From the sequence record PQ287644.1: a DNA stretch of 64,000 nt; one strand, given 5' to 3'. A program made the translations under genes and the position numbers. Shown here piece by piece: positions 3,456 through 10,551 of this stretch. The notes under the pieces were generated by a model, which was given only the letters and a program-made list of their open reading frames with translations, searched no databases and was not told where the DNA came from. How positions within the stretch are numbered: the first letter of the stretch is position 1; each line of letters starts with the position of its first letter.

Positions 3456-4049
3456 TTAATACGTGAGGGTGCCGTCGTAACGGAATTGTCCGTTAAAACG
3501 AGGAATGGCGTCGTATTGGCTTTCTACGACAGCCAGGGTACCAGTAACGGTGTTGGAATCAATGGTGGCTTGAGTGAACTCCCCGTCGAGGGTAATTTCA
3601 TCATCCGTCAAGTCGTAGTAGCATTTGGCTTTGATCAGCGCTTTAATGTGTTCAGGGTTACGACTCCCTTTGAACACCAATACCGCACCTTCAATGATAT
3701 CTTCGTCTCGTTTGACTTGGTAAATACCTTCCACCCCCTGGGTTTGTAAAGTGTCCCAATCAACCGGATCGGGAGTTTCCAGCATGGAGACCTTATTCTT
3801 CACATAATCCGCTGGGAGGTACCGTTGGTTCTTACCGGTCAGTTTACCTTCGGAATCGATATTGACCACCCGAGCAAATTCACCGCCTTCTACCTCAACT
3901 TTCCTGAGGTCAGAGAGGGTAGTGTTGTCCAGGGTGAGTTGCTCTAATACGCTAACAATGTTCGGTTCATCGGAATAACGTTCTTTATTAAAAGCGATGA
4001 ACCGTTCCAGAAACAGTAGATCGTTTGGAAAGGCCATGGGCGTGTCCAC
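3456..4049 (-). CDS. Hypothetical protein, probably virion/tail-associated
   Basis: 197-aa ORF co-oriented and tightly packed with the fibre genes (start at 4049 or 4037). Confidence 0.65.
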   Translation of the reverse strand: MDTPMAFPNDLLFLERFIAFNKERYSDEPNIVSVLEQLTLDNTTLSDLRKVEVEGGEFARVVNIDSEGKLTGKNQRYLPADYVKNKVSMLETPDPVDWDTLQTQGVEGIYQVKRDEDIIEGAVLVFKGSRNPEHIKALIKAKCYYDLTDDEITLDGEFTQATIDSNTVTGTLAVVESQYDAIPRFNGQFRYDGTLTY

Positions 4050-4136
4050 AGAAGTAGATAGAGGGTTCGGTCATTAGACCATAAAATTGGTAAATAAAAT
4101 AGTACCCAAACCCATATTCTTCACTTACCTGGTTAT

Positions 4137-4176
4137 TTAACTTGAGGTTCTTTTCAAACCTACATCATTAGGGTGA
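4137..4176 (+). promoter_or_regulatory. Candidate early (virion RNAP) promoter, variant copy
   Basis: TTAAC at 4137, then AAACCTACATCATTAGGGTGA at 4156 (16/21 match to the copy at 52950). Confidence 0.55.
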
Positions 4177-4217
4177 AGCACAGACAGAGACCGTTTAACG
4201 GTCAAGGAGACTTGTCA

Positions 4218-4376
4218 ATGAATACCCTTCAGGCTAAAGTTGAAAGCCTGCGTCAAAAAGCTCGTCGTTATGCCCGTCAGGCGATGTGTTCCCTAGAACC
4301 GTCTTACCGGCAACATTACCGCCAACTGAGCTACGAAGCCAGCCGTATGGCGGATCGCCTTCAACGCCAACTGTGA
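4218..4376 (+). CDS. Small basic early protein (52 aa)
   Basis: SD AAGGAG upstream of ATG 4218; MNTLQAKVESLRQKARRYARQ. Confidence 0.65.
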   Translation: MNTLQAKVESLRQKARRYARQAMCSLEPSYRQHYRQLSYEASRMADRLQRQL

Positions 4377-4414
4377 TTGGTGTTTACCCCCCTTCCCCCA
4401 CACACAGGTGTGAG

Positions 4415-4645
4415 ATGAGCAACGTTATCGATATGTTCAGCTGGCGGGACTCGAAGAATAAGCGTTCGAGTCAGTTCTCAGTGCTTCATCGTGAGATCGA
4501 AGCACTGTACGTCATTCAGAACCGCGCGCTTCAGGAGATCGCTTCAGCGGATACGGTCTTGGCGTATGAACAAGCTAAACTCTTCCTGATGGATGTCAGG
4601 ATTGAAATCTACACCAAAACCATTGCGTTGAGTCAGTGTATCTAA
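4415..4645 (+). CDS. Small early hypothetical protein (76 aa)
   Basis: ATG 4415 with upstream AGGTG; MSNVIDMFSWRDSK; 3' part of track ORF 4286-4645. Confidence 0.6.
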   Translation: MSNVIDMFSWRDSKNKRSSQFSVLHREIEALYVIQNRALQEIASADTVLAYEQAKLFLMDVRIEIYTKTIALSQCI

Positions 4646-4651
4646 GGACAT

Positions 4652-4690
4652 TTAACGTCCAGTGGTAATCAGGTCTGTATTACTTGGGTG
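4652..4690 (+). promoter_or_regulatory. Early (virion RNAP) promoter
   Basis: TTAAC-N14-AGGTCTGTATTACTTGGGTG; contains the TATTAC core of phiKZ early promoters. Confidence 0.7.
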
Positions 4691-4731
4691 TTTAAGTACG
4701 CAACATTCATTCCTTTTTGGAGGTTTACGCC

Positions 4732-5211
4732 ATGGCTAAACAATCGAACTTCACCATCGCCAACTACAACGCCGTCCTGGAAGCTGTTAAAGCCAACAAC
4801 GGTTATGTGGTCGACGTTCACAACAATCGTCGCACTCCGTACCGTGCGGCTGGCATCGCTGCTCTGGTGAAGGGCGAAAGGGTTACCCCGGTGCTGCTGT
4901 GCCATGGTTCCTACTTCTGCCTGAACTCGCTGCACAAGGAAGCCGATGGTTCGGTGACCCTCTCCAGCTGGTCGGTCGGTGTTACCATCTTCACCCACCA
5001 ACACGGTGGGCTGGAAGAAGCGATCCAAGCCTACAACAAGGAGCAATCCGAGTGGGCGTTGTCGGGTGGTCAACTGATGCATGTACGCATCTTCGACTAC
5101 ACCGACGAAACCGCACCTGTGTTCGGCGAGCCAGTTGATCTGGCAGGCGAAGTCGTGGGTGCGCTGGCAGCACAAGAGCCGATCGCCAAGGTCGACATCC
5201 CTGCTCAATAA
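4732..5211 (+). CDS. Early hypothetical protein (159 aa)
   Basis: SD GGAGG before ATG 4732; strong C-ending codon bias. Confidence 0.8.
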   Translation: MAKQSNFTIANYNAVLEAVKANNGYVVDVHNNRRTPYRAAGIAALVKGERVTPVLLCHGSYFCLNSLHKEADGSVTLSSWSVGVTIFTHQHGGLEEAIQAYNKEQSEWALSGGQLMHVRIFDYTDETAPVFGEPVDLAGEVVGALAAQEPIAKVDIPAQ

Positions 5212-5256
5212 CGAGCAGTTTTCTGTACGTAATCTGACTTCATTAGGAGCAATGCC

Positions 5257-5664
5257 ATGAGTAATGTAATGCACGTTAGCACCATCGCCGGTCGTACCGC
5301 CCTGACGGTGATCACACCCGACGACCTGCCGGTTACCAACTGGATGGAAAATGTGCTTGCTGCACAGATCCAGAAAGTGGTTGACGAAGGTAAGGGTTGG
5401 CCCAACGACGCCGAGTTCAAGGTGGAGGTTACCTACCACACTTGGCCACAGGGTTGGGACCGGGAAGTGTACACGCACTTCTTTACCAACCGCGCCGAGC
5501 TGGACTCCTACATCAAGGACCAGCACGAGTGGGCCCGTTGTGAGGACAACATGGTGAAGATCAAGATCTACAACTGGGACCTCGGTCCGAACTTCATGGA
5601 AACTCGTGAGTTCGGTGGTCCTGAGTTGTGGAACAGCCCTCTGAGCCGTCCTTACTTGACGTAA
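5257..5664 (+). CDS. Early hypothetical protein (135 aa)
   Basis: SD AGGAG; same codon bias; followed by a terminator. Confidence 0.8.
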   Translation: MSNVMHVSTIAGRTALTVITPDDLPVTNWMENVLAAQIQKVVDEGKGWPNDAEFKVEVTYHTWPQGWDREVYTHFFTNRAELDSYIKDQHEWARCEDNMVKIKIYNWDLGPNFMETREFGGPELWNSPLSRPYLT

Positions 5665-5672
5665 GGCTAGCG

Positions 5673-5716
5673 CTACCTCCCTGCCACTGGCAGGGAGGTA
5701 GTACTCCTTTTATTTT
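5673..5716 (+). terminator. Intrinsic terminator
   Basis: 13-bp stem CTACCTCCCTGCC/GGCAGGGAGGTAG followed by a T-rich tract. Confidence 0.75.
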
Positions 5717-5764
5717 TTGCTTCATTTCCATTTTTATAGTTCACTCAACACAACGAGCAAAGTA

Positions 5765-5905
5765 ATGCCTGACACTAACAACGGTCCTGTGGAAATAAAG
5801 ATGGAACGTGTGCAGTTCAAAAGAATAAAAGTAAGGGGTCTTCGTAAATTCTGGTTACTCATCAAACGCTTACTGAGTAAGGACACCGATTATAAGAACA
5901 CTTGA
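5765..5905 (+). CDS. Possible small basic protein (46 aa)
   Basis: Short ORF filling an AT-rich gap; no clear SD. Confidence 0.3.
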   Translation: MPDTNNGPVEIKMERVQFKRIKVRGLRKFWLLIKRLLSKDTDYKNT

Positions 5906-5940
5906 CGAACGCATGGCTAAGTCAATGGAACTAAGGGTAA

Positions 5941-5980
5941 TTAACTTCTAGTTGTAATCAGGTCTATATTACCTTTGTGT
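5941..5980 (+). promoter_or_regulatory. Early (virion RNAP) promoter
   Basis: TTAAC-N14-AGGTCTATATTACCTTTGTG. Confidence 0.7.
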
Positions 5981-6040
5981 ATATTAAGGCGTGGTTGCCT
6001 TCCTATTTTTAAGACCGAATAAACACAAAGGATGTTATCT

Positions 6041-6388
6041 ATGAGTCAAGTCAAGAAAGCGATGAAAGGTGTTCTGAAAGGTAACAGTCGAACGGCCGAT
6101 AAGTTTGTATTACGGATGCCAGTTGGGCTACGTGATAAGGTTGGCGAACAGGCAACGGCGAATGGGCGGAGTATGAATGCTGAATTCATCATGCTCATAC
6201 AGGCTGCGATAGGCAGTGGGAACACAGGTGGAACCCAAATAAGGACTATTCCATCGGTAGGTGGGCCTGTTCGGGTTGAAGGACTTCCAGGCGTGGTAAC
6301 TGAATTGATACCGACACCGACTGGATTTAAGATCCGGGCAAAAACCTGTGAGGGAGAGGATATTTATTCGTTATGGGAGATTGTTTGA
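6041..6388 (+). CDS. AmrZ/Arc-like ribbon-helix-helix DNA-binding protein with a distinct beta-rich C-terminal domain
   Basis: [34 protein letters not shown] aligns with P. aeruginosa AmrZ [34 protein letters not shown] (recalled). ATG 6041 fits SD spacing better than 6032. Confidence 0.85.
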   Translation: [115 protein letters not shown]

Positions 6389-6389
6389 T

Positions 6390-6590
6390 ATGACTCGTTT
6401 CGAGAACTCGGATAAGGAAAAGAAACCCAGTGTTCCTTTGCAGAACAAAATCGGGTTTGCGGGGATAGGGTCCGACGATGAGCCCATGCTGTGGACACTC
6501 ACCCTCCCGGGTGAAAACTCGGTGGGTTACGCAGAACCCTTTCGACCTGAGAAAGAAGACCTGATCCCCCAACCGGTCTCTTTCGATTAA
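6390..6590 (+). CDS. Small hypothetical protein (66 aa)
   Basis: ATG directly after the stop of the RHH gene; SD GGGAG. Confidence 0.55.
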   Translation: MTRFENSDKEKKPSVPLQNKIGFAGIGSDDEPMLWTLTLPGENSVGYAEPFRPEKEDLIPQPVSFD

Positions 6591-6602
6591 AAATGTTGTA
6601 TG

Positions 6603-6657
6603 CCCCTACCCAGCCGAAAAGGGCTGGGTAGGGGGTTAATCTCTTTATTTTTTTTTT
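6603..6657. terminator. Bidirectional terminator between convergent genes
   Basis: 13-bp stem CCCCTACCCAGCC/GGCTGGGTAGGGG plus a T run. Confidence 0.75.
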
Positions 6658-7711
6658 ACTTCACTTTGGTAACACACGACGATCTGACCAGTTCGGTGAT
6701 GCCGATCATCGTAGCTGCCACCGTCTCGGTGATCTTATCCACCTCGACCACCCCACTCAGCAGTCCTTTCAGCTCATCGAGTCGCTTATTGAGGGCTTCC
6801 TTATCGGTGTCGTTACTGTAGTGGTTAATTTGACCTTCCACCTTGGCAATCTTGCTCTCCAGTACTCGGCGGGTCTCAAAGATGCTCACCCAACTGTTGG
6901 ACATTGCTTCTTCACAACGACCGATTTTTCGGACAAATTCCTTAGCGGAATTGAGGTCTTTGATCGTTGTCACTTTAGGCAAGCCGATAAGTCCATTCAC
7001 GTATTGCTGGATACCAATAACCATGCCATCCGCTACGCCAGAATCCTCACCTTCATCCGCCAGTTTCTGGTACTTCGCTTTACGCTCATTCAAACGAGCC
7101 ACCGCGGCTTCCAGTTTGGTGACCTGATTGCGCATTAGACTGCTGTAAATGATTCTGGACTCGAAGACTTCCTCGATCACCTTCTTGGCCTGTTCGGGTT
7201 GGTGTTCCACCGGAAGGGCTTTAATGTCGTCAAGTTTCTTAACCACGGTCTCCTTAGCACTTTGGTCCTCGATCTTGTTGGCGATCTGAGTGGCTTCTTG
7301 GAGAACAGGTCCCACGTTGGTGGTTGTCACCTTAGGACTCGCTACGGCGTCTATCGCCTTTTCAGCGGCCTTAGCGGATTCATCTACCTTATCCAGTTTG
7401 TCTTTAACGTTCTTCTTGAAGAGCCCACCGAAGATCGACTTGAACAGGTTCTTGATGTATTCCCAGGCTTTCTTAATCCCTTCGCCAATCGACGACAGGA
7501 AACCCTCATTCCCCGCCACTTCATTACGGGTCAGGTAACCCGCGGTATGGAGAACGGACTGAAGGTAACGCTGATTCGCGGTCAGGTCCATTCCTTCAGT
7601 TCCCATGACCGTATCCGAGAGACCATCGAGCACTTGCTCGATATGTTCCATTTCTGGAACACCGTCCATCGGTTCGTCTTCGTATTCAACCGTGTTGGCT
7701 TGCTGTTCCAT
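6656..7711 (-). CDS. Internal head protein, likely protease-processed
   Basis: Acidic propeptide, then AGNE|GFLSSIG, fitting the S/A/G-X-E cleavage consensus of the phiKZ gp175 protease; coiled-coil body. Confidence 0.7.
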   Translation of the reverse strand: MEQQANTVEYEDEPMDGVPEMEHIEQVLDGLSDTVMGTEGMDLTANQRYLQSVLHTAGYLTRNEVAGNEGFLSSIGEGIKKAWEYIKNLFKSIFGGLFKKNVKDKLDKVDESAKAAEKAIDAVASPKVTTTNVGPVLQEATQIANKIEDQSAKETVVKKLDDIKALPVEHQPEQAKKVIEEVFESRIIYSSLMRNQVTKLEAAVARLNERKAKYQKLADEGEDSGVADGMVIGIQQYVNGLIGLPKVTTIKDLNSAKEFVRKIGRCEEAMSNSWVSIFETRRVLESKIAKVEGQINHYSNDTDKEALNKRLDELKGLLSGVVEVDKITETVAATMIGITELVRSSCVTKVK

Positions 7712-7728
7712 TATTTGCTCCTTAAGGG

Positions 7729-10551
7729 TTAAAAGAGTGAGAGAACACTCCGGGAGGTATACAAGGAATGGGTTTCAGGTTCATCCCCTATATCAAACAT
7801 TTCTTGGCCGGTGATATTACCCAACAACTCATGACCCTGTTCTTTACTCATAAGAATGTCCACTTGTTCCTTAGACCATTCCATGATGTTAATACTGCGG
7901 GTCATAATGTTGAGTTTATCCCCGGTGTCCATATCCAAGAGTTTAAAGTAACAGGGAGCATCCTGGCCAGTACGCCAGGTACGGGCTTGGACCTGTTTCA
8001 CTTCATACTCCCGGAAAGGCGCATTCAACAGAATGGTCAGGTTCGCCATAATCAAGGGATACCCTTCCTTCAGGGAATCAAAGATCGCAATCAACGCACG
8101 GAGAGTGGGGTCTTTCTCAAAGCGTTTGATATTGGCGTCTCGTTCACTGCTGTTTTCACCGTATACTGTCACATTCGGATACCCGACCTTCGTGAGGTAT
8201 TCTTCACAGAGTTTAAGGGCGTCCACGTAGGAGGTAAAGATCAGAGTCTTCTTCTCCACGTTATCGATGAGCTCAGGGAGTCCTGCGTGCGCAATGGTGT
8301 CCTTAATAGCGTTAATACGGGCTCGTCCTAAAACGTTCCCTAAGGCCTCTCCACGCAGTTTTAGACCCAAGTACTTAACCGCAGACTTAATGTTCCTGAA
8401 ATCCTTCAGGGCGGTCCCTTTAAGGCCCTTCTCGATGTCTTCTTCCACCCGCTTACAGAACTGACTGTCTTGGTTATCCGTAAAACTGTTATACCCCCGG
8501 GTTCTGAACCGGTGAACAATCTGTTTGTACTTCAACAGATTCTCAACCGCTTTAGCATTCCCCTGGATGGACAGTTCATACGACGTCAGAACATCGTTGT
8601 AGAATTCCAAGAAGCTCGGCATGTGTTTCGTATAGAACGCAATCCGTTCTCCAATGTAAATCTGCATTTGGAGGCGAATAGCATCCAAGGTGTATTGATC
8701 CGAATTCGGGATCTTTACCTTAACCAGTTCCATAGGAGGAGGATCGCCCAATCCCACCAGTTCAGGGATCGTAAACTTCATACGTCCAATACGCCGGCTC
8801 AGCAAATCCATTAACGAGGGACGGTTACGTCCATAGGACGCCATAAAGAACTCCCGAGCCTTCTTATCGAAGTAGGGATCGATCATACAAGTCGTTGGGA
8901 AGATCTCACTCCCCTGTGCCTTTAGCGGGGTCCCGGACATCGGAAGGTGATGCCCGAACAGTTCCATGTCGCACCATTCGATCAACTTCCGTGTACGGGC
9001 TGCTTTAGGGTCATTGAAGTTCTGGGATTCATCCAGAATCATCTTCAAAGCGCCTTTATGCTTCTTACTCAGCGTAATGAGGAAGTTCTCCAAGTATTTC
9101 CCCATAACACTGGTCATGTAATCGTAATGGACGATGTAGAAGTCATACCCTTCTTCTAAGACCTTACCGCTGATACTGGTCCAGATACGGGGTGGAACCT
9201 TAAAGTGCTGGAGGGGTTGTTCTACCCAGACTTTATCCACAATGTTCATAGGGCAAAAGACAACCGTCGGAGCTGTATTGATCAATTGAGACCACGCCAA
9301 GGACGTAAAGGTATTGTGGGTCACGATGTAGTCATCCACCACATACAGCTTCTCGTCATTATCCAAGGCAATGCAGCAAGTCTCTTGATTCTCCACTTTC
9401 TCCCAGTGTACTAGCTTCAGTTGCAGGTCTTCATACTGGGAGAAGTTATACATTCCTTGAATACGGGGATTGTCTCCAATTAACCCAGTCATCATCTTGT
9501 CGACGTCTCGGTGCTTAAAGTCAACCTTATACAAACCGTTAACCAACACTGGCTCCGTAGCTGTTCCTCCAATGGACCACATTAACCGACGGAAGTTCTC
9601 CATCCCAATCCGGTTCTCGTGATACGCGGATAAGACGGATTCACTGATTAAACACCCCACGTGTTCAATCACCGATGTGACTATATTAAAGCGATCCCGA
9701 TACGGGAACTCCAATACGTTGTCCCCTATTACAACGTCGGTATTGACCAGCTCCCTTGCAGCGGCTTCAGACGAAGTATTACAAGGGACGCTGTATCCAT
9801 TGATCTCACCCACTAAGGGGAAGTACACGTCCTCTTTACGGGCTTTATGGAGTACTTCCAACGTGGTTAAGATTTCATCGATCCCATTCACCGTGGTTTT
9901 CCACAAATGATACGGATGAGAGTCAGCCGTTCTACCGTCTTCGAAATAGAAGCGATAAACTTCCGTGATCCCCTGAGGGTAAATACTCTCCACACACGCG
10001 GTATCACCTCCAGGGGTCACTACGATATCCTTGACCTTCAGGTCACCCAAGGCTTTCCACCCATTTGGGACTTTAACCCGGGTTGAGAGAGGCATGGCTT
10101 TCCCTGAACCTGGTTTAGCATCCAGCAGCATCCCTTTCAAGTGATAACTGTTCACAATGATCGGGTATTGCTGAAGAAAGTCCAACTGCTGAGGAAAGGG
10201 AACTGTGTTGAACTGATTCAGTTTCTTAAGATCAAAAGGTTTACCTCCCGGATTAACCGTATCTTTAATCCAGGTCTCGGTTTCAATGAGTTCCTTCAGT
10301 TCACTCAACGCTCGTCTGCGGGTACGAAGGTTCCGTATTTTGAGGAGTTCCCCCACAATGTGGTGCAATTCTACCAGGAAGAAGTTATGCACCTTAATGG
10401 TGTCCCAGGATTCGCGTCGAATCTGATGTTTCGTTAAGAGAGAAGTGCTGTAGAACTTCTCAATGTCTTTGGCTAAATCGTAATAGGACACACCCGTAAT
10501 GTGTACGTAGTCTCCCGTTTGTTTTATCTTAACTGAAAACAGTCCTAACAT
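7729..10551 (-). CDS. SNF2/SF2 helicase interrupted by an intein
   Basis: Walker A DAKPGSGK|T after splicing; ILDESQ; MSGTP; QVQARTWRTGQ. Confidence 0.9.
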   Translation of the reverse strand: MLGLFSVKIKQTGDYVHITGVSYYDLAKDIEKFYSTSLLTKHQIRRESWDTIKVHNFFLVELHHIVGELLKIRNLRTRRRALSELKELIETETWIKDTVNPGGKPFDLKKLNQFNTVPFPQQLDFLQQYPIIVNSYHLKGMLLDAKPGSGKAMPLSTRVKVPNGWKALGDLKVKDIVVTPGGDTACVESIYPQGITEVYRFYFEDGRTADSHPYHLWKTTVNGIDEILTTLEVLHKARKEDVYFPLVGEINGYSVPCNTSSEAAARELVNTDVVIGDNVLEFPYRDRFNIVTSVIEHVGCLISESVLSAYHENRIGMENFRRLMWSIGGTATEPVLVNGLYKVDFKHRDVDKMMTGLIGDNPRIQGMYNFSQYEDLQLKLVHWEKVENQETCCIALDNDEKLYVVDDYIVTHNTFTSLAWSQLINTAPTVVFCPMNIVDKVWVEQPLQHFKVPPRIWTSISGKVLEEGYDFYIVHYDYMTSVMGKYLENFLITLSKKHKGALKMILDESQNFNDPKAARTRKLIEWCDMELFGHHLPMSGTPLKAQGSEIFPTTCMIDPYFDKKAREFFMASYGRNRPSLMDLLSRRIGRMKFTIPELVGLGDPPPMELVKVKIPNSDQYTLDAIRLQMQIYIGERIAFYTKHMPSFLEFYNDVLTSYELSIQGNAKAVENLLKYKQIVHRFRTRGYNSFTDNQDSQFCKRVEEDIEKGLKGTALKDFRNIKSAVKYLGLKLRGEALGNVLGRARINAIKDTIAHAGLPELIDNVEKKTLIFTSYVDALKLCEEYLTKVGYPNVTVYGENSSERDANIKRFEKDPTLRALIAIFDSLKEGYPLIMANLTILLNAPFREYEVKQVQARTWRTGQDAPCYFKLLDMDTGDKLNIMTRSINIMEWSKEQVDILMSKEQGHELLGNITGQEMFDIGDEPETHSLYTSRSVLSLF
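9313..10098 (-). mobile_element. Class 3 intein (262 aa, Ala1) in the helicase P-loop
   Basis: Starts AMPLSTRV and ends IVTHN before Thr+1; WCT triplet (HLW, ETCC, VTHN). Confidence 0.9.

Follow-up and report, generated by a model that had tools for sequence, protein, structure and literature searches.

AmrZ-like regulators carried by phages and other mobile elements have been described in Pseudomonas. Fourteen mobile elements of Pseudomonas, some of them obligately lytic myoviruses, were found to carry AmrZ homologs; an amrZ deletion was complemented by five of the six homologs tested, and the homologs of PaBG (a lytic phage of 258 kb), phi3 and JBD68 lowered the levels of the Csy complex, while three of the six did not repress (10.1101/673095). 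Gp53, an early ribbon-helix-helix (RHH) protein of 126 amino acids (aa) from the 94-kb phage PhiPA1019, was reported to bind the fleQ, pslA, amrZ and ftsZ promoters and to alter motility, biofilm formation and cell division, and its DNA binding was abolished by the substitutions R15A, R21A, M35A and N36A (PMC13650114). In this study, the gene at positions 6041-6388 of a stretch of 64,000 nucleotides (nt) from sequence record PQ287644.1 (the whole stretch is called the window below) was analyzed computationally and compared with these systems. A previous reading of the letters without database searches, referred to here as the sequence-only reading, had taken the gene for a jumbo-phage mimic of the host regulator AmrZ under its own early promoter. 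The explanation favored by our analysis, with a probability of about 0.5, is that the gene product is a transcription factor with two domains from a family carried by phages, in which an RHH domain with a K-V-R reading head is joined to a predicted SH3-like barrel, and which may be directed at host genes.

The gene is an intact open reading frame (ORF) on the + strand that ends at 6388 and could begin at an ATG at 6032 or at 6041. Of the two, 6041 is more probably the start because the spacing of an AAAGGA sequence (6027-6032, located 8 nt 5' of this ATG and overlapping the alternative one) fits it and because the record of phage EL uses the same start, and the protein therefore has 115 aa. 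The three peptides quoted in the sequence-only reading were all located in this protein (residues 16-27, RSMNAEF at 43-49, and residues 75-92). The gene is homologous to ORF163 of EL (CAG27257.1) and was uninterrupted in each of the six EL-like lineages examined, with ratios of nonsynonymous to synonymous substitution rates (dN/dS) of 0.30-0.44 at dS values of 0.10-0.17; together with the Pfam Arc score given below, this establishes that the ORF exceeds chance. Bases 4000-9000 of the window matched Pseudomonas phages HHBS8_1 and HHBS47_1 with 100% identity, and their identity with EL, MIZ-Pa99, PaBa1, phiRU and GXNNE2/A8 was 96-97%. The window thus belongs to Elvirus, a genus of Chimalliviridae, the nucleus-forming jumbo phages, and the jumbo-phage origin proposed from the letters was correct.

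The DNA-binding domain and its distance from AmrZ

Both the family search and the structure search concluded that the N-terminal half of the protein is an Arc-type RHH domain. Pfam Arc (PF03869) covered residues 16-56 with E=1.9e-14 and 53.6 bits (cut-off 20.4), and the best match among solved structures was AmrZ (3qoq, E=2.7e-8, query residues 15-56 on chain positions 15-56), followed by Mnt (E 2.1e-5) and Arc (E 0.22). A genome scan yielded the chromosomal orthologs of P. saxonica (L008:1501-1824, 108 aa, 100 bits against 3qoq) and P. helleri but not that of P. aeruginosa, and these two served as AmrZ comparators after they had been checked against 3qoq. Alignment with the P. saxonica ortholog placed AmrZ Met1 at chain position 4 of 3qoq, and therefore R17, K21, V23 and R25 of the window protein correspond to R14, K18, V20 and R22 of AmrZ. 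The four contact residues that the sequence-only reading had named are thus all conserved; in addition, S13, R28 and N43 of AmrZ are matched by S16, R31 and N46.

In AmrZ, K18, V20 and R22 read the bases of two GGC half-sites, the substitutions K18A, V20A and R22A each weaken binding and abolish repression, R14 is required at algD only, and few RHH proteins have a valine in the middle of the ribbon (PMC3325190). The presence of the K-V-R head in the window protein argues for GGC-type half-sites as its targets. Each of the residues on which DNA binding by Gp53 depends (R15, R21, M35 and N36) is present as well, as R25, R31, M45 and N46. The AlphaFold2 monomer contained helices at residues 30-41 and 45-58, and the ribbon residues 21-27 lacked a strand in it, as expected when the partner chain is missing.

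The likeness to AmrZ therefore lies in the Arc-type RHH fold, the extended N-terminus, the S-R...K-x-V-x-R set and the equivalents of R28 and N43. Unlike AmrZ, the window protein is encoded by a phage, stands behind a phage promoter and carries an SH3-like domain in place of the AmrZ tetramerization domain. With Arc and Mnt of phage P22 the protein shares the RHH fold, the Pfam Arc family, a phage origin and the dimer-of-dimers logic, but these two gave much weaker matches than AmrZ did, and the middle ribbon position of the window protein is a valine. Arc and Mnt belong to immunity circuits of temperate phages. TprA, a conjugation transcription factor of an integrative conjugative element, is another AmrZ-like RHH protein of mobile elements, and its model (NF052309) was the sole NCBIfam match, to the RHH part only (E 3.5e-8). 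Membership in the TprA family was rejected, since the score of 33.8 bits is far under the cut-off of 150 bits.

Several results weigh against the protein being an AmrZ-type factor acting on the AmrZ regulon. The RHH domain is 43-49% identical to that of AmrZ, with 43% over 49 columns and 25/51 identities in BLASTP against an AmrZ ortholog. When 169 proteins were ranked by the identity of their RHH domains to that of the window protein, AmrZ was 147th, more than 140 Arc-family clusters being nearer. When 1.84 billion representatives were searched exhaustively with HMMER, 1075 matches were obtained at E <= 1e-3, and the best 150 of these all scored above 41.6 bits, against 37 bits for AmrZ. The complete R-K-V-R set occurred in 65 of 178 related proteins, in which the K-V-R head was widespread. 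G14/V28 stands where AmrZ has the Y11/E25 pair supporting its N-terminal loop, and G42/Q54 stands where AmrZ has the H39-E51 salt bridge between dimers.

The nearest RHH neighbors of the window protein were metagenomic proteins. At the three reading positions, K was found in 130, V in 101 and R in 176 of the 178 related proteins. Because the full R-K-V-R set is shared by so many of them, the sequence comparisons indicate that the head marks a broad subfamily rich in mobile elements and is not the sign of an AmrZ copy. High identity in the RHH domain would be expected of a close mobile copy of AmrZ, as seen in the mobile homologs named in 10.1101/673095 (70-82%; over the 49 columns, 82% for PaBG and 80% for phi3), whereas the value for the window protein is 43%; the Noxifer homolog, for which no activity is reported, reaches 78% and the metagenomic protein P0073 91%. 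The proposal of an AmrZ mimic was consequently sound as regards an AmrZ-type reading head, and the identity, the rank and the wide distribution of the head argue against specific mimicry of AmrZ.

The C-terminal domain and the phage relatives

AmrZ's C-terminal domain (residues 67-108), through which AmrZ tetramerizes, is absent from the window protein: the BLASTP alignment with the AmrZ ortholog stopped at residue 64, and comparison of the C-terminus with chromosomal AmrZ C-termini by hhalign gave no similarity (probability 0.1%). In its place, AlphaFold2 predicted strands at residues 76-79, 82-92, 95-102 and 107-113, with predicted local distance difference test (pLDDT) values of 70-76 in this part, in a model that was built on an alignment of 21 sequences and had a mean pLDDT of 68. 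The top Foldseek match in the PDB was a designed SH3 domain (TM score 0.66 on the target, root-mean-square deviation 1.9 Å over 44 columns); the N-domains of eIF5A and EF-P, PetP and the Tudor domain of UvrD followed, all of these matches, the top one included, being weak, and the search of BFVD gave nothing informative. The predicted fold can be called SH3/KOW-like with moderate confidence.

Alignment of the C-termini identified a W-x-P..G..V...G-V-I...L-x-P pattern common to the window protein, PaBG gp302, Noxifer gp106, SM1_0115 and many metagenomic proteins. When the C-termini alone were compared with those of PaBG, SM1, Noxifer and others by hhalign, a probability of 90% was obtained (E 1.6e-6, 37 columns); pairwise BLAST missed this similarity. 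The sequence-only reading had described the AmrZ C-terminus as replaced by an unrelated beta-rich, SH3/KOW-like segment. Its lack of relation to AmrZ was confirmed and its SH3-like character is supported by the prediction, but a one-off replacement is contradicted by the occurrence of the same domain in PaBG, Noxifer and SM1_0115. The combination of an RHH domain with a small beta domain, as judged by sequence comparison, places the window protein among phage AmrZ-like RHH-SH3 proteins. The metagenomic protein P0073 (132 aa, on a contig of 62 kb) joins its RHH domain, 91% identical to that of chromosomal AmrZ, to a beta domain of the phage type, and it looks like a recent fusion of a host-like head with a phage-type tail.

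PaBG gp302 (PaBG_00302) is similar to the window protein in that it combines an RHH domain with a beta domain of the W-x-P..G..V..G-V-I type, is encoded by a lytic jumbo phage of P. aeruginosa, and has its gene in a run of small genes of unknown function. It differs in the much higher identity of its RHH domain to AmrZ, in that its C-terminus could be aligned by profile comparison only and not by pairwise BLAST, and in that PaBG is a Baikalvirus, outside Chimalliviridae.

SM1_0115 is a protein of 126 aa from a phage of 93 kb, and exactly those positions that Gp53 needs for DNA binding are occupied in it by R, R, M and N. Because the protein length, the phage size and the four residue numbers agree, SM1_0115 is very probably the ortholog of Gp53 of PhiPA1019. 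The window protein was 34% identical to SM1_0115 over query residues 13-109 in BLASTP and 33.7% identical over residues 9-109 (88% of the query) in tblastn. Gp53 and SM1_0115 thus resemble the window protein as RHH proteins of lytic P. aeruginosa phages with a two-domain build and the four binding residues. Gp53 was shown to be expressed early in PhiPA1019, and early expression of the window gene is suggested by the promoter class. A difference is that PhiPA1019 is a siphovirus-type phage that presumably relies on the host RNA polymerase.

Relatives with an ADKFV[VL]R[LM] strand were encoded on 213 viral contigs of IMG/VR, and 14 among the best 80 of these 213 contigs were longer than 230 kb. 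Two further observations were made during these searches. The metagenomic protein P0022 (3201 aa) contained seven stretches matching the unit of RHH plus beta domain, which could reflect a tandem array that was read through as a single ORF, or the use of a wrong genetic code in calling the gene. About 20 IMG/VR contigs of 12-15 kb (L052, L055, L062 and L075-L092) carried a near-identical RHH match at most 1.8 kb from the contig end, and these look like one family of small elements.

The transcription unit, its promoter and its leader

The features of the locus are listed in the table.

Table. Features at and around the RHH-SH3 gene, in window coordinates
Feature	Position	Strand	Details	Basis
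Intrinsic terminator closing the upstream operon (ORF161/162 homologs)	5672..5715	+	14-bp GC-rich stem, then T-run	fold -31.9 kcal/mol, z -6.2
Near-invariant non-coding leader, from terminator to start codon	5716..6040	+	325 nt	six-phage alignment
Putative small basic ORF within the leader	5765..5905	+	46 aa	annotated in HHBS8_1, MIZ-Pa99, GXNNE2 and PaBa1
Phage promoter motif	5938..5981	+	TTAACT 5941-5946; GTCTATATTACC 5962-5973; G 5979, inferred start	position-weight matrix scan
Perfect palindrome AAGGC-N6-GCCTT, candidate operator or hairpin of the 5' untranslated region	5986..6001	+		only exact copy in the window
Gene of the RHH-SH3 protein (EL ORF163 homolog)	6041..6388	+	115 aa; stop codon included	ORF, Pfam, structure match, homology
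Arc/AmrZ-type RHH domain	6077..6220	+	residues 13-60; readers K21, V23 and R25	Pfam, 3qoq alignment, AlphaFold2
SH3-like beta domain (predicted)	6248..6385	+	residues 70-115	AlphaFold2, Foldseek, hhalign
Co-transcribed ORF (EL ORF164 homolog)	6390..6590	+	66 aa	starts 1 nt past the stop of the RHH gene
Bidirectional terminator before the convergent ORF165 homolog	6603..6658	both	13-bp GC-rich stem; A-run and T-run flanks	fold -32 kcal/mol, z -4.8; hairpins on both strands

The homologs of ORF163 and ORF164 form a self-contained two-gene unit between two strong terminators. The promoter motif in front of the unit, about 44 nt long, was derived from the window's own sites. It occurred six times in the window (at 4158, 4673, 5962, 21197, 47676 and 52952), always on the + strand and always before genes of unknown function, with a G six bases past GTCTATATTACC; three of the six copies fall inside 2 kb. 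The copies scored 38-48 bits on the position-weight matrix, against 6.8 for the next-best site and a maximum of 16 after shuffling. The copy at 4158 coincides with the 'putative phage promoter' annotated in the EL record, where it is the sole copy annotated, and a scan for sigma-70-type promoters flagged 5941-5970 as well. Sequence analysis of phiKZ-type phages can recover a single class of promoter, the AT-rich early one that the virion RNA polymerase uses, with its start 6 nt downstream (PMC7598289; PMC5312081). That the RHH-SH3 gene has its own promoter, as the sequence-only reading had proposed, appears well supported by a high-scoring motif that follows a strong terminator; that it is an early promoter is suggested by analogy with phiKZ-type phages, in which case the virion RNA polymerase would transcribe the gene early.

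The leader that separates the start codon from the terminator was more conserved than any neighboring gene. Among the six EL-like phages, 2 of its 325 columns were variable, compared with 32 of 348 in the RHH-SH3 gene and 6-15% in flanking genes, and the edges of the conserved stretch match the terminator end and the start codon. In GXNNE2 (L013), the segment equivalent to 5257-5715 is replaced by another ORF162 homolog and another terminator, so that a different hairpin with a T-run lies at the position of the 5672-5715 terminator, and the replacement ends exactly at the invariant leader. No Rfam family was found in 5716-6040, and folding of 5716-5960 gave no structure signal; the stem at 5960-6050 was weak (z -1.75), and the inferred start comes after half of its 5' arm. 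The 46-aa leader ORF had no match in Pfam or PHROG searches. The conservation of 5716-5937 is accounted for by neither an RNA family nor a folding signal.

Arc, Mnt and AmrZ repress their own genes. It is less likely that the RHH-SH3 protein is a phage-directed regulator that mainly represses its own gene at the palindrome AAGGC-N6-GCCTT downstream of its promoter, any effect on the host not being under selection. This palindrome occurs once in the window, has GGC/GCC half-sites with AT-rich outer flanks, lies between the promoter motif and the ribosome-binding site within the invariant leader, and is itself invariant in the six phages; in addition, AmrZ represses itself (PMC3325190), and a GGC-N5-GCC sequence precedes the amrZ gene in the chromosomal orthologs. 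However, there is one site only, its N6 spacing is one base wider than in those orthologs, and its linker is not A/T-rich and lacks an A-tract. GGC-N6-GCC occurred six times in the 64 kb, and some GGC-N4-7-GCC is expected by chance in about 3% of 60-nt stretches, so the site is suggestive at best; it was also recovered as a weak hairpin in the terminator scan. Since the palindrome is invariant, along with the 300 nt around it, in lineages carrying the R25W substitution described below as well, its conservation is not specific to the site. Furthermore, the DNA of Chimalliviridae is enclosed, so that autorepression would require import of the protein, and no comparable leader was found at the homologs of PaBG, SM1, Noxifer and L017.

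Downstream of the RHH-SH3 gene, the ORF164 homolog had no family match (Pfam, PHROG) and no toxin match, and ORF164 is absent beside P0008, a 42%-identical ortholog of the RHH-SH3 protein that adjoins an SNF2-type helicase as the window gene does. In public records the RHH-SH3 protein is named 'hypothetical protein', 'transcriptional regulator' or 'partition protein ATPase'. The last name traces to PHROG families 2685 and 795 and is wrong, since the protein has only 115 aa and no ATPase motif. A role as a ParG/omega-type centromere binder or as the antitoxin of a toxin-antitoxin pair, which RHH proteins fill elsewhere and which the PHROG labels and the presence of a small downstream ORF could be taken to favor, is barely credible here: besides the size, the missing motif and the properties of ORF164, the annotations show no ParA-type gene nearby, no iterated repeats lie upstream, and the phage is lytic.

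Some features of the records and of the neighboring helicase were also observed. In the MIZ-Pa99 record (L011), two minus-strand ORFs are annotated over the RHH gene and ORF164 and replace those genes, and the taxonomy of this record is given as Straboviridae despite 97% sequence identity with EL. The SNF2-type helicase of the window (940 aa, 7729-10551, - strand) aligns in two blocks with a homolog of 685 aa; an insertion of about 260 aa directly after the P-loop ends in ...THN followed by T, and Pfam detected only Helicase_C. The insertion looks intein-like.

Variation within Elvirus and the possible targets of the protein

Comparison of the EL-like phages indicated that the reading head differs between lineages. 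EL, GXNNE2 and PaBa1 carry R25W and G29E, while R25 and G29 are retained in the window phage, MIZ-Pa99 and phiRU. The R at position 25 is kept in 176 of the 178 relatives, and position 29 is at least 90% conserved in the family. Alanine substitution of the residue equivalent to R25 abolishes function in AmrZ (R22A; PMC3325190) and DNA binding in Gp53 (R15A; PMC13650114). Because three of the phages carry R25W and G29E, DNA reading appears not to be maintained across the genus. The substitutions among EL-like phages cluster within residues 1-64, which hold all 10 of those in phiRU and 5 of the 7 in EL, and the SH3-like part is the best-conserved part within these phages, the RHH domain being the best-conserved part across the wider family. 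The dN/dS of the RHH-SH3 gene is higher than that of the neighboring ORF165 (about 0.15), and that of ORF164 was 0.13-0.47. From these sequence comparisons it appears that, in the EL lineage, either DNA reading has been lost or changed or the RHH domain is not under the strongest selection.

These results can also be explained if the gene is an accessory one in which DNA reading is dispensable, with the SH3-like domain constrained, perhaps via protein contacts, and the RHH domain drifting. Such an explanation would fit the substitution of two highly conserved positions, the loss of function caused by R22A and R15A, the clustering of changes in residues 1-64 and the elevated dN/dS, and the Tudor domain of UvrD found by Foldseek binds RNA polymerase. 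We nevertheless consider it unlikely, as the window lineage, MIZ-Pa99, phiRU and the distant ortholog P0008 retain every contact residue, the RHH domain is the part best conserved across the family, and the Foldseek matches are weak.

If the protein is the two-domain, host-directed factor favored here, it would dimerize via the RHH domain and, like AmrZ, would read one GGC-type half-site with each beta-ribbon. In place of the AmrZ tetramerization domain, the SH3-like domain might join two dimers, probably with another spacing of the half-sites. The virion RNA polymerase would transcribe the gene early, and the protein would be made in the cytoplasm; since the DNA of Chimalliviridae is enclosed at that time, the protein would meet the host chromosome first. 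By analogy with PaBG gp302 and Gp53, host promoters overlapping the AmrZ regulon would be the likeliest targets, and the leader palindrome may be a second, autoregulatory site. Rewiring of the host regulon by this protein, as the sequence-only reading envisaged, is plausible on this analogy; an effect within minutes and a poisoning of host AmrZ, also envisaged there, are conjectural. The points that count against the favored explanation, beyond the distance from AmrZ, are the moderate quality of the AlphaFold2 model together with the lack of any Foldseek match reaching E 0.001, the R25W substitution in three EL-like phages, and the independence of phiKZ-type phages from host transcription (PMC13282480).

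The CRISPR-Cas system is one host target that was considered specifically. The statement that mobile AmrZ homologs repress CRISPR-Cas was borne out for the I-F system, with the lytic jumbo phage PaBG among the active sources (10.1101/673095). A dedicated repressor, selected to shut down transcription of the host type I-F cas genes, would be consistent with the repression shown for amrZ of PaBG, phi3 and JBD68 and with an architecture equal to that of PaBG gp302, and, among the phages of its nucleus-type cluster, EL alone is matched by a host spacer (PMC11448039). This specialized role is nonetheless improbable. In Chimalliviridae, the nucleus already protects the phage DNA against DNA-targeting CRISPR systems (PMC11797060); the RHH domain is far more diverged from AmrZ than those of the three active homologs; one of the six homologs failed to complement and three of the six did not repress (10.1101/673095); and transcriptional repression after infection would probably be slow against Cas complexes that are already made.

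A wider reading, which we regard as unlikely, is that the cytoplasmic early RHH-SH3 factor is a dedicated regulator of host genes, because the phage DNA is enclosed from injection on and a cytoplasmic factor would meet only the host chromosome. The R25/W25 split would then be a switch in this activity or its loss, and the leader would be linked to the factor as an undescribed cis-regulatory module, small RNA or gene of a small protein.

In conclusion, phage-borne AmrZ-like regulators that act on the host, including one from a lytic jumbo phage, have already been published for PaBG (2019/2020) and Gp53 (2026), and the gain from the present analysis is therefore incremental. It places Elvirus, a genus of nucleus-forming jumbo phages, among the phages with AmrZ-like regulators, the EL-type protein being a diverged new member. 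Modest additions are the predicted SH3-like domain, which is common to the phage proteins but not to host AmrZ, the R25W split and the invariant leader. The R25 and W25 variants and the leader offer a descriptive route to asking whether phages that are independent of host transcription still tune host genes.

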